Both the position numbers and the translations under genes were made by a program. 64,000 bases of DNA, taken from Blastocystis sp. Blastoise (Eukaryota > Protista > Bigyra: Opalinata). The notes beneath the pieces are model-generated. The model was not told where the DNA came from. It did not search any database and saw only the letters and a program-made list of their open reading frames with translations. Below are positions 56,322 to 63,041 of this stretch, in pieces (within the stretch, counting starts at the first letter, position 1; each line of letters opens with the position of its first letter). The DNA lies in NCBI GenBank assembly GCA_039096225.1, contig JBBPEB010000009.1, positions 186,001-250,000 on the forward strand, in the 5' to 3' direction.

Positions 56322-56919
56322 TTCATTTAACATATATATATATATACTATTATTATTATAAATGTTGTTTATTTTCTCTTTTCTATATTTTTATTAAACA
56401 TGATTCTCTTTATATAACCATTTTTCCTTTTTGTCATTTTAGATAAAACGCAATAACTCATTCTATTTGTTTCTCTCCTATTTATCATGTTTTGTTTCTC
56501 ATTTTCACTAAATATATATCAATCTACAAGTAATCAAAGGCAATATTTCAAATACCTTTTCGATCTCATTTATACATTGCTAACTATATAAATATTCATA
56601 TGAAATAAGTCAACGTACGAAATTCTTTGCTTTTAAATAATGAATAGGAAATATAATTTGTAATTCTTCAAAGAAACAGAGATACTAAGTTTTAACAAGC
56701 TTTTAGTAATACCAATTCGCCAATAATTCTTGAAATACATATATTTTTCGTTATTTACCACATACTGTACACTAATTAACGATGGAAACATCAAATCGAA
56801 CATAATTATAACTATCTATCTGTTTTGTATTATCCATATATACAAATCTACACGTTTTAAGAGTTTTCTACATGAAGTAAAATTCAAAAAAATATAGATG
56901 AAAAAAGAAAAGTAAAAAC

Positions 56920-56992
56920 TGGAGAAGAGGGGCATCGATCCCCTTACCTCTCGCATGCTAAGCGAGCGCTCTACCATCTGAGCTACATCCCC
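56920..56992 (-). tRNA. trnA-AGC: tRNA-Ala(AGC)
   Basis: GGGGATGTAGCTCAGATGGTAGAGCGCTCGCTTAGCATGCGAGAGGTAAGGGGATCGATGCCCCTCTTCTCCA. Cloverleaf, G3-U70 pair, downstream T-run terminator. Confidence 0.96.
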
Positions 56993-57075
56993 ATATCTGT
57001 GATTTCTTCCTTAGTACTCCATTTGAATATATACAATTTAGAATATACATATGATTCTTTATATTTAATTTCAAC

Positions 57076-58250: not shown

Positions 58251-59021
58251 ATGAGTAAATCTACAAAAGGAAAAACAGGTATTTATTAGATTTTTATAAG
58301 AATGTTGATTCATATATATGTTATAGACAAAAAAGTTAGGATTATTTTACAATCTGGTGATTTTAAAGAAGGAATCTTAAATGGAAAAGGCTATACTGAA
58401 TACTCTGATGGCCGTCAATATGAAGGTAATTATACAAATGGAGTATTAAATGGTCAGGGAGTTCTAAAACTAGCTTCAGGAGATATATATTCTGGTGATT
58501 TCGTTAATGACGAAGTCAATGGAATGGGACGTTTAAGTCGAATGGATAATAGTTTTATTGTAGGAAAATTCGTTGGCACATATACACGTACAGAAGGTAT
58601 AATTCAAGAACATACAAGTGATGGAAGTGTTTATACTGGAACTTTAAAGAATTTACTACGTGATGGAAAAGGTCGTTTAGAAACTCAAGATAATAATGTA
58701 TATGATGGTGATTGGAAACAAGGATTACGTCATGGATATGGAACTGCTATATTCAGTAACGGTGATAGTTATACTGGTCAATGGTTAAATGATCAAATTC
58801 ATGGTAAAGGTATATATAAATGGAAAGATGGTTCTATTTATGATGGTGATTGGGTTAATGGAAAACAAACAGGACATTGTGAATGGACTTATTTTGATCA
58901 TAGTAAATATATAGGAAGTGTATTGAATGGTGAACGTAGTGGTAGAGGTCGACTAGAATATAATTCTAATTACTGTTTAGATGGATTTTGGGATAAAGAT
59001 CATTATAAAGGTCTTTTTTGA
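58251..59021 (+). CDS. MORN-repeat protein
   Basis: Multiple YxGxWxxGxRHGxG repeats. 2 exons. Confidence 0.92.
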
Positions 59022-59536
59022 GTTTTATTTCATATTATTCTTTTTTTGTATGTTTCATTCATTCTATTTTTCTTCTTTTTCTTTTTTCTTCTTTTGCATA
59101 CATTAATTATGGTTTTGTTTGTGAATAAATATATAATTATTATATATGAATAAATAAAATTTCAAAAATATCATTGCTTGTAGTATCACGTCAAATAATA
59201 ATATTTGTCAATAGTAAATAATTAAACAAGAATTCAATTATAACAAAACAAATTTATATAACAATTAAATAATGAAAAAAAAAAAATTTGCAAAAAAAAA
59301 AAATTAAAGAAAAGTGAAAAAAAATAAAAGAAGAAAAAATTAAAAGAAAAGTGAAAACAATAAAAGAAGGAAAAAATATACACATGAAGAGTAAATATAA
59401 AAATATGTATACATTATATAAATATAAATATGTATACAGTAAATAGATATAGATATATATATAATAAATAGATATAGATATATATATAATACATAAATAT
59501 AGATATGTATATAATATATATATATTAAATATAGAT

Positions 59537-59727
59537 GTCTTCAGTATATGTATATTCCATCAGAACTCACCTTAGGAACAATCCTTGGGACGAATCCTAC
59601 CCCAAAAGGATAATCAACTATAGTAAGGCCACCATAACCGCGGGGATGTTGACATTACATAGGGTAGGATTCGTCCCAAGGATTGTTCCTAAGGTGAGTT
59701 CTGATGGAATATATATATACTGAAGAC
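59537..59727. ncRNA. Long inverted repeat / hairpin (66-bp arms with one mismatch, 59-nt loop) downstream of the Dicer stop codon
   Basis: 59537-59602 is the reverse complement of 59662-59727 except at 59550/59714. The repeat itself is certain; an RNA function is inferred. Confidence 0.7.
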
Positions 59728-59994
59728 TAAATAGTTATAGAAAAATGAATATATAATACTCTTTACATATGAAGATGAACAAAAAAAAATTAGATAAATA
59801 TATAAATGAATATATAAATGAATATATAAATAAATGTATAAATATATATAAATAAATACGTATAAAATAAAAACAAATAAATAAATATAAATAAATATAT
59901 ATAAATAAATTATTTAAATAAATAAAAATTAGATATTACGAAAGAGACTATAATAGTTCATAAATCACATCAAATAATCATGAGAATTGAGCTA

Positions 59995-60320
59995 TTACAT
60001 GGGTTGTTGATCATACTCATCAAAAAAGTCGATTCCCGTGATTATCAGATATATATTTCTAATAAATAAGAGTTCCATCATAGTAAGGAGGTCTTCATCT
60101 TTAGGCTTGATTCCCACGGGAATTGACCCAAAATTACTAGATGAACTAGGCTTTATGTTTGTAGTTAGAGAAGAAGAAGAGGAAGAAGTAAGAGAAATAG
60201 TTAATGCATTAATATTACCGATACGAAGAATAATAATTTCTTCAGATCCTGATTTTTTCTTGTCAATAGTCGCGGGACGATTCTTGAATGCAGGAAATTG
60301 ACTTGCAATATCCTATATAA

Positions 60321-60367
<47 letters not shown>

Positions 60368-61443
60368 TACTTGGAAGACTTGAGAAATGGCCATTTTGGG
60401 AGTGTCCAGGAAGTCGTTTAAGGAAGGAGTGAAGAGGATATCTAGTACCTTCTTACAACTATAGAGATTATAATAATAATATATATATATATATATACTT
60501 AGACCATCCTCCATCTAAATATATACCTCCAACGAGTGCTTCAAATACATCTCCATATATCTATATATATATATATATATATTACTATATATATATTACT
60601 ATATATATACTTTGAGTGGAGCTGTATACACGGCCATATGCTGAACAAAGAATGACGGAGTACTACAGTCAGTTATCTATATATAATCATATATAATAAT
60701 ATTAATATATATAATAATAATATAGACTAGAATAACTGGAGTAGTTAATTATACATATATATATACTGATTCAAGAAGATTATTTTCAGGGAATAAAACC
60801 AAATATTTGATTATTTGGAAATAAATAATCATGGGAATTGAGTGATATTGATAGAAGCGATCACTGATATACTAATAAAAATAGAATATTAAATATATTG
60901 ATATATATTATATATATATTAGATTTTAAGAATAGAATAATATACGAATTGAAGCACGTGGACTTCACGATTTAAGAGGATATACTGTTGGAGTGACGTA
61001 CAAAATAATAGATGCGTCAGCATTTCGTTACGTACCAAAGAAGAACGAATTACTATATATGTACGTATAATAATAATAATAAATATAATAATAAATATAA
61101 TAATAATATAATAACAAATATAATAATAATATAATAATAAATATAATAATAATATAATAATAAATAGAATAATAAATATAATAATAATATAATAATAAAT
61201 ACAGGTGCAGTTTCCCGGGAGTGCCTTAAGATCTGTATAAATATCATTTGAAGAACATGTTTGCATATATTGTTGGAACACAGTCATTTTTTCATCGTTA
61301 TTCAATTGGCTATTTGAAATGATCGTTTTCTTCATCACCGGTGTCGAAGCCAAAACCGCGGTAATTTTATAGTTGATGGCTTGCGATATATATAAGTCAA
61401 CGAGTGCATCTCCTAGAAACTCTAATACCTATATATATATATA

Positions 61444-61498
<55 letters not shown>

Positions 61499-61713
61499 TA
61501 TAGTTTAGCCAGGAGTATCCTGCTGACTTATCGGTGAGGGCCATAAGCATGTACCCATACTCATGATAAGAGTAATGAAGTGTAGATTCTACATCACTGA
61601 TCATTTGACGAGTGTTACTATTTCCTCTTAAATATATATTAATATCACGAAATGACGTGACGAAGGCTGTGTGAACGTACGGAGAACCATTAGCGTACGA
61701 TGCTTTCATCTAC

Positions 61714-61749
<36 letters not shown>

Positions 61750-63041
61750 TGCATGAATTACAGCTGCATTATTCATATTAGTACAAAGATATTGACAAAA
61801 ATCCATTGTTTGTTCGTCCCCCGCGGTTATATTGACGCATCCGACGAGGGCTTCGAGAACATCCGAGCGCTGATCATCTGTAATCGCAGACGGAATTCCC
61901 GCGGGAACTACTTGTTTCGATTTTTGATTTGAATCTATATATATATAAATAAATATAATAGAATGAATATATATATATTATATACCTTTAAACAGGAATG
62001 GCTTATAATTCAGTATAATAGGAACAGATTTGAGGGGAATATATATATAACGATCAGAAAGAACTTTTTGAAAGGTCTTATTTTTAATCGTATCCTATAA
62101 TAATAAGTAGAAGGGTAACATGATATATATATATATATATATACTGTTTTCCACTTGGTTAAAACTTCTTCAGAAACAGATTTATACCAGAAGAATCCAT
62201 AGAGACTACTAAAGAACCTAAAGAGACAAAATAATCACGGGAATATATATATCATTATTTTGAATGATAAGTATAATAATAATAAATATAATAATAATAA
62301 ACATAATAATAAATATAATAAACAGAAACATAATAATAAATATACTAAACATAAACATAATAAACATATAATAAAATAAAATACTTAAGGAAAACATCTC
62401 CAAAGAATTCGAGTACTTCATAAGAATAGACGCTCATGTCACTTGATGTAAACACATTAAATAGTGTTCCTGCTGCGTCATTGGGGATTGTTAACGTGCT
62501 TAGAGAGGGGTTCTTGAGGGATTGAAGAGGAATGAATGTTCGTTTCAAATAATCGTGGGAATCGAACGGTTGAACCAAAGGAAGAGTGTAATTCATTTGT
62601 TTCTGTATATCGGTATAAATACGATATATATGGTTACACCAGAATAAATGATAGTAGAGGGAGTGCACGTGATTAAGCACAGTCATGTGTGACGCGTCAA
62701 GGATAAATAGTGAACAGTAGTACGGAACTATCACCTGATTGGCTGATGGTGACGAACTAGAGAGTATATATAATGATAATAAACATAATAATAATAATAC
62801 TAATAATAATAATGATTTATATACGTTTTCTTCTCTCTATAGGAAATAAATTCTTTGGTTTTTCTCTTTTGAGTTGTATTATTCACTGCCATATGTACCT
62901 CTGCGAGTGGCTGATATTGATATAAATACTGAAAAGAATAGGGATAATGAGGGATATTCCCGCGGGGAAGTTGGAGGGAATAATCAGGTAAATCTTGAGG
63001 ATCTACACGATATTTAGGCGATACACATTGTATATATGTTC

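Follow-up and report, generated by a model that had tools for sequence, protein, structure and literature searches.

A 66-bp hairpin beside a Dicer-like gene of Blastocystis: a candidate cis-acting double-stranded RNA element

Blastocystis is the commonest eukaryote of the human gut, and RNA silencing seems to be unstudied in this organism. A full-text literature search combining Blastocystis, Dicer and Argonaute returned no paper with those terms in its title or abstract, and Dicer and RNAi are unmentioned in the genome paper (PMC12129017). In Blastocystis sp. Blastoise, a long inverted repeat is found shortly after the stop codon of a gene that encodes a pair of RNase III domains. The question raised by this locus is whether the hairpin is there by chance or is a substrate of the enzyme encoded beside it. 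An earlier note on this DNA had proposed that Dicer dices its own transcript as negative feedback and/or releases about three phased small RNAs from the hairpin.

The window, that is, the whole stretch of 64,000 nucleotides of the genome that was analysed, has a GC content of 24.6%. The reading put forward here, which is tentative, sees the hairpin as double-stranded RNA that acts in cis: it would be transcribed along with the 3' region of the Dicer-like gene and then cut by an RNase III enzyme, and feedback on Dicer could result.

Structure and surroundings of the hairpin

The inverted repeat described in the earlier note was recovered at the same place (Table 1). It is made up of two 66-nt arms, 98% complementary, with a 59-nt loop between them (191 bp overall), and the sole mismatch of the arms (59550 G vs 59714 T) gives a G-U pair in the plus-strand RNA and A-C in the minus-strand RNA. 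The extra TCAAC/GTTGA pairing reported within the loop is present in the predicted folds of both strands. RNA folding yields -132.2 kcal/mol for the minus strand (z -18.8) and -130.6 kcal/mol for the plus strand (z -17.7), and none of 200 shuffled sequences folds as stably. The long near-perfect intramolecular duplex that characterises hpRNA and inverted-repeat siRNA loci is present in this element, with 66 bp.

The ends of the palindrome are sharp: the adjoining 60 nt on each side are complementary at 18 of 60 positions, under the mean of 23.5 for AT-rich background. The element is also far richer in GC than its surroundings, as had been noticed before (0.414, against 0.138 in the left flank and 0.127 in the right flank). 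A GC content of 0.41 amid a background of 0.13 suggests that the element is either young or constrained. Each arm carries a 13-nt tandem (59570-59595) formed by CCTTAGGAACAAT and CCTTGGGACGAAT, which are identical at 10 of 13 positions and contain a short palindrome in each unit; the short palindromes CCTTAGG and CCTTGG are found within the arm. On the plus strand, one frame is open across the entire hairpin (59535-59723, 62 codons) and has no Pfam match; it is probably due to chance, with an expectation of roughly 1 in 10 over six frames.

Table 1. Features of the convergent gap and of its two neighbouring genes (positions in the window)
Feature	Position	Strand	Remarks
Converging MORN-repeat gene	58302..59021	+	Stop 59019-59021; Pfam E 8e-33; ~100-nt T-rich plus-strand tail
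Region beyond hairpin	59161..59536	-	Minus-strand T-rich; plus-strand AT skew +0.35; 25-nt and 37-nt tandem repeats; long T runs
Left arm	59537..59602	n/a	66 nt; GC 0.42; carries 13-nt tandem at 59570-59595
Loop	59603..59661	n/a	59 nt; GC 0.41; TCAAC/GTTGA pairing; CCGCGG core 59638-59643
Right arm	59662..59727	n/a	Reverse complement of left arm save 59714 (T vs 59550 G)
Spacer, Dicer-like stop to hairpin	59728..59994	-	267 nt; GC 0.13; minus-strand T-rich; many 12-nt tandem repeats
Last open segment of Dicer-like gene	59995..60312	-	Stop TAA 59997-59995; no Pfam domain match
Exon with end of second RNase III domain	60501..60560	-	DVFEALVGGIYLD motif (at 60560); PF00636 profile 85-102, E 0.0017
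Start of second RNase III domain	61372..61428	-	LEFLGDA (at 61428); PF00636 profile 3-23, E 1e-4
First RNase III domain	61693..62400	-	LEFFGD near 62400, DVLEALVG near 61850; separate exons

A palindrome of this kind could be produced by the assembly itself, for instance as a fold-back chimera of nanopore reads, and the assembly was in fact made with Flye from R9 nanopore reads. Fold-back chimeras are normally kilobases long and are located at read ends, whereas this element has just 191 bp and is embedded in unique sequence on both sides, inside a 1.7-Mb contig. Its 59-nt centre is unique, its arms differ by one mismatch and the assembly was polished with Illumina reads, all of which leaves an artefact a very slight chance. 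The hairpin is a genuine, single-copy, well-bounded 191-bp fold-back sequence.

The distance from the hairpin to the stop codon of the minus-strand neighbour, previously given as about 270 nt, is 267 nt, and the TAA is followed by an in-frame TAG. This neighbour had been called Dicer. Two RNase III domains with their acidic motifs were found in it, and it is called Dicer-like here on those two domains alone. The motifs LEFFGD, DVLEA, LEFLGDA and DVFEA appear in the correct order and in separate exons of the minus strand. The domains were read exon by exon. Since they are interrupted by introns, each Ribonuclease_3 match of Pfam stays under the curated cut-off, and a six-frame Pfam search of the genome for RNase III missed them for the same reason. 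Judged from its sequence, the neighbour is a Dicer-like gene with two RNase III domains and intact acidic motifs. Relatives were sought with the Dicer exon, by look-ups of exact products and by a scan of JGI metagenomes, and no match was obtained in any of the three. The GC-rich palindromic word TTCCCACGGGAA is found at 60111-60122, inside the last coding exon of this gene.

Genes with Piwi domains are encoded at two other places of the genome (C26:481 kb and C17:835 kb) and, together with the Dicer-like neighbour, make an RNA-silencing pathway plausible. A match to the Maelstrom domain (C2:258463-261828) falls within an open frame that runs for 2623 codons without a break, which is unusual here, since the majority of genes in this genome are divided into short exons.

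Copy number and origin of the palindrome

The earlier note found no second copy of the arm in the window, and BLAST and mismatch searches extend this result to the whole genome. The complete element, searched by BLAST at E up to 10 against the 33.34-Mb genome in 34 contigs, matched itself and nothing else, and both 33-nt halves of the arm, with up to 3 mismatches, matched the two arms alone. The terminal 11-mer of the element is not enriched genome-wide (28 occurrences, 23 for the reversed control), and no other facing plus/minus pair of it is found anywhere in the genome. Related to this, the flanks ATATAGAT and TAAATAGT are not duplicates of each other, so a target-site duplication is absent, and TA, TTAA or TWA at both ends are absent too; the best comparison of 11-nt flanks reaches 8/11, within AT-only sequence.

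Membership in a MITE family, an alternative named beforehand in the note, was rejected for this genome. The element has terminal inverted repeats, but it is single-copy, no family or autonomous partner shares its ends, and dispersed copies and a target-site duplication are absent. A foreign source was sought as well, and searches of bacterial, plasmid, phage, viral and metagenome sequences were without match: exact 22-24-mers of the element are missing from GTDB genomes, JGI metagenomes and IMG/VR, and blastn found no match in plasmid or phage records.

These results bear on the possibility that the palindrome is inert DNA, an orphan fold-back element or a young inverted duplication placed beside the Dicer-like gene by chance. 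It could be all that remains, or all there ever was, of a non-autonomous transposon, or else a duplication whose source has been lost or was foreign, and intra-palindrome gene conversion, instead of function, could keep the arms alike and GC-rich. Its layout is MITE-like, with long terminal inverted repeats and a short core within 191 bp; its boundaries are sharp, its GC content stands out like that of an exon from the AT-rich DNA around it, and it has no target elsewhere in the genome. Furthermore, many types of transposon are described for the genome, with a transposable element content of 5.6-7.5% (PMC12129017). On the other hand, the single copy, the terminal 11-mer that is neither enriched nor otherwise paired, the absent target-site duplication and the lack of a source in bacteria, plasmids, phages, viral contigs or JGI metagenomes count against it. 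Chance placement less than 300 nt from one of about 2 Dicer-like genes, out of some 8,500 genes, would also be improbable if such hairpins are rare, with a roughly estimated probability of 1-9%.

The rarity of comparable hairpins was estimated from the window and the next 200 kb of the contig (264 kb), counting complex hairpins with arms of at least 28 nt. The sole other one in this sample is a 29-nt palindrome (C3:368686-368744). The arms of this one are 29 nt long and joined by a loop of a single nucleotide; AAACCCGTGAA/TTCACGGGTTT forms its core, and it resembles the iterated palindrome family. As a rough estimate, a hairpin would be sited by chance beside one of the handful of RNA-silencing genes, among ~8,500 genes, with a probability of 1-9%, where the upper bound derives from none being found in the unbiased sample of 200 kb and the estimate presumes that such hairpins are rare. 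The idea that RNA-silencing genes as a class carry hairpins was rejected: no comparable complex hairpin is found within ~1.5 kb of the 3' ends of the two Piwi genes, which speaks against a general pattern. Taken together, the inert orphan palindrome is ranked nearly as likely as the cis-acting double-stranded RNA element.

Several RNA identities were also considered. No Rfam family matches the element at E up to 10. A canonical miRNA precursor was rejected, given the absence of an Rfam match and a stem that is perfect over 66 bp, and tRNA identity was rejected because the sole tRNA of the window is a tRNA-Ala (AGC) at 56919-56993 on the minus strand. This tRNA gene is placed between the GSIII gene and the next gene.

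The hairpin could otherwise be a small-RNA gene in its own right, miRNA-like or hairpin-siRNA, driven by a promoter of its own and acting in trans on a target whose complementarity falls short of near-perfect or which lies outside the genome, in a virus or another organism. A long perfect stem is ideal for dicing, and the poly(dA:dT) tracts situated 140-250 nt leftward could be a nucleosome-free region of promoter type. Nevertheless, when 22-24-nt windows over 59553-59602, the 50 nt of the arm with complex sequence, were searched with up to 3 mismatches, the genome contained no further site, and a target for trans-silencing was rejected at this threshold for these windows and for the 33-nt arm halves over the whole genome. 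Rfam, IMG/VR and phage records give no match, and a perfect 66-bp stem differs from canonical miRNA precursors. Such a gene is thus distinctly improbable and a trans-silencing hairpin seems unlikely; the lack of another genomic match for the tested 22-33-nt pieces of the arm points to a role in cis rather than in trans.

Transcription and processing signals in the convergent gap

The hairpin is located in a convergent gap of 973 bp, on the side of the Dicer-like gene, 267 nt from its stop and 515 nt from that of the MORN gene. The median intergenic length in tortoise strains is 645-719 bp (PMC12129017). Protein searches with the MORN open reading frame gave matches with at most 37% identity, and the search of representative sequences was dominated by multi-MORN proteins. 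Tandem repeats hem the hairpin on both sides: a 37-nt A-rich unit in two copies (59280-59353), a 25-nt unit in five copies (59372-59525) and a 12-nt unit (59784-59860).

Introns and 3' flanks of this genome are rich in T on their sense strand, in the plus-strand GSIII gene as well as in the minus-strand Dicer-like gene. Both flanks of the hairpin are T-rich on the minus strand, as described in the earlier note, with a plus-strand AT skew of +0.35 on the left and +0.31 on the right. This minus-strand T-rich domain continues unbroken from the Dicer-like stop across the hairpin to ~59160, where the strand bias switches, and the T-rich plus-strand tail behind the MORN stop extends for just ~100-140 nt (AT skew -0.65). 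The hairpin is thus included in the T-rich domain of the Dicer-like side, which fits minus-strand transcription through it. The argument from composition is weakened by the other convergent gene pairs in 264 kb, which have equally long, lopsided T-rich domains. A search of sequencing runs with the words of 58300-62800 found 0.40 of them in one run of the same organism and 0.10 in a poly(A) gut metatranscriptome. RNA-seq data of this strain are also reported (PMC12129017).

The signals that could process such a transcript were inspected. It had been suggested that an intron-like segment (59939-59727, minus strand) ends exactly at the first base of the stem, so that the hairpin might form an exon of its own. 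The terminal dinucleotides are as stated (GT at 59939-59938, AG at 59728-59727), but the donor GTAATA differs from the local consensus. The dominant donor is GTATAT, found at 123 of 386 boundaries between exons and AT-rich sequence in the window plus 200 kb (264 kb), and GTATAT appears to be the 5' splice-site consensus of this genome. The classical donor AAGGTGAGT occurs twice in 264 kb, both times within the hairpin arms; its use in the right arm, with its complement in the left arm, as donor and acceptor was rejected because the donor of this genome would be GTATAT.

As for polyadenylation, no AATAAA was seen by eye on the minus strand of the spacer (59728..59994). The word TGTTTGTT, which serves human subtypes of Blastocystis as their downstream element, is more frequent in the window than expected (12 sites, 2.2 expected), but its 12 sites (e.g. 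6171, 25421 and 49547) are not at ORF ends. In tortoise strains, this element is not enriched downstream of genes (PMC12129017). It was therefore rejected as a marker of poly(A) sites, and it cannot place the poly(A) site here since the tortoise strains are without the downstream element (PMC12129017).

The position of the palindrome could alternatively reflect a signal at the DNA level. By forming a cruciform or binding a protein, the palindrome would then mark where the two convergent genes meet, for instance by halting polymerases or replication forks or by positioning nucleosomes. Its site in a convergent gap, where long poly(dA:dT) tracts and tandem repeats adjoin it, is in line with this, as are the short palindromes of the arm (CCTTAGG, CCTTGG), the 13-nt tandem and the CCGCGG of the loop. 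A boundary signal should recur at convergent pairs, whereas this hairpin is one of a kind, with none at the other pairs in 264 kb, and its arm is without the iterated word TTCCCRYGGGAA of this genome. A DNA-level signal is accordingly held to be improbable.

A possible role and comparison with known systems

A near-perfect double-stranded stem of 66 bp is the kind of RNA that RNase III enzymes with two catalytic domains are classically known to cut. In the preferred reading, a cis-acting double-stranded RNA element, Dicer-like transcripts running at least 270 nt past the stop, owing to a long 3' UTR or to read-through, would carry this stem. Cleavage of the stem would separate the transcript from everything downstream and set free a few small-RNA duplexes. 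Since nothing else in the genome matches the arm, the effect would be confined to this locus and could consist of ending or destabilising transcripts at the convergent pair, with feedback on the Dicer-like mRNA as a further possibility. Within this chain, transcription through the hairpin is suggested by strand composition, cleavage by the Dicer-like enzyme would be expected from general knowledge of such substrates, and the regulatory effect would depend on both. The more specific claim of the earlier note, here worded as a Dicer-like enzyme that regulates its own mRNA through dicing of the 66-bp hairpin, carried in the 3' UTR or in read-through sequence, is regarded as doubtful.

If the hairpin is transcribed and diced, it would be a natural reporter of Dicer activity and would add another RNase III enzyme that senses its own abundance. 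It would also be the first small-RNA locus described in Blastocystis, as far as searchable papers show. Otherwise, the locus would count as an oddity, an orphan palindrome in a genome very rich in AT.

Among the known systems, the hpRNA and inverted-repeat endo-siRNA loci described in Drosophila and in plants, to which young miRNA genes that arose by inverted duplication also belong, match a founder or target gene elsewhere in the genome. The hairpin resembles them in its long near-perfect inverted repeat, its short loop and the several phased Dicer products that would be expected from it, and differs in that its arm matches nothing else in the genome. With MITEs and fold-back transposons it shares the size (~190 bp), the long terminal inverted repeats, the sharp ends and the condition of a GC island in AT-rich DNA; unlike them, it is single-copy and lacks a target-site duplication, and its ends are shared neither by a family nor by an autonomous partner. 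A third comparison is provided by the fail-safe termination hairpins cut by the yeast RNase III Rnt1 downstream of poly(A) sites, which are short stems capped by AGNN tetraloops. The hairpin of Blastocystis is likewise downstream of a gene, where RNase III could putatively cut read-through transcripts, but it has a 66-bp stem and a 59-nt loop.

Parallels are also found in RNase III enzymes, in whose own or partner transcripts hairpins have arisen repeatedly, as with Drosha, which cleaves Dgcr8 mRNA, and in the rnc operon of E. coli (PMC3814725). The hairpins of Arabidopsis DCL1 (MIR838) and moss DCL1 (MIR1047) have independent origins (PMC4429486). As in rncO, located in the E. coli rnc leader, in Drosha/Dgcr8, in MIR838 of DCL1 intron 14 and in MIR1047 of Physcomitrella DCL1 intron 7, a strong hairpin is physically linked in Blastocystis to the gene of a putative double-strand-specific RNase. 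The Blastocystis hairpin is much longer and more perfect than the miRNA-like hairpins of the MIR838/MIR1047 type. The known self-regulatory hairpins are placed in the 5' leader, the coding region or an intron, and owing to this position their cutting destroys the message, whereas the hairpin described here lies 267 nt after the stop codon. If self-regulation is true in this case, it would mean that RNase III enzymes came to control themselves independently once more, with the hairpin in a place new to such systems, behind the stop codon.
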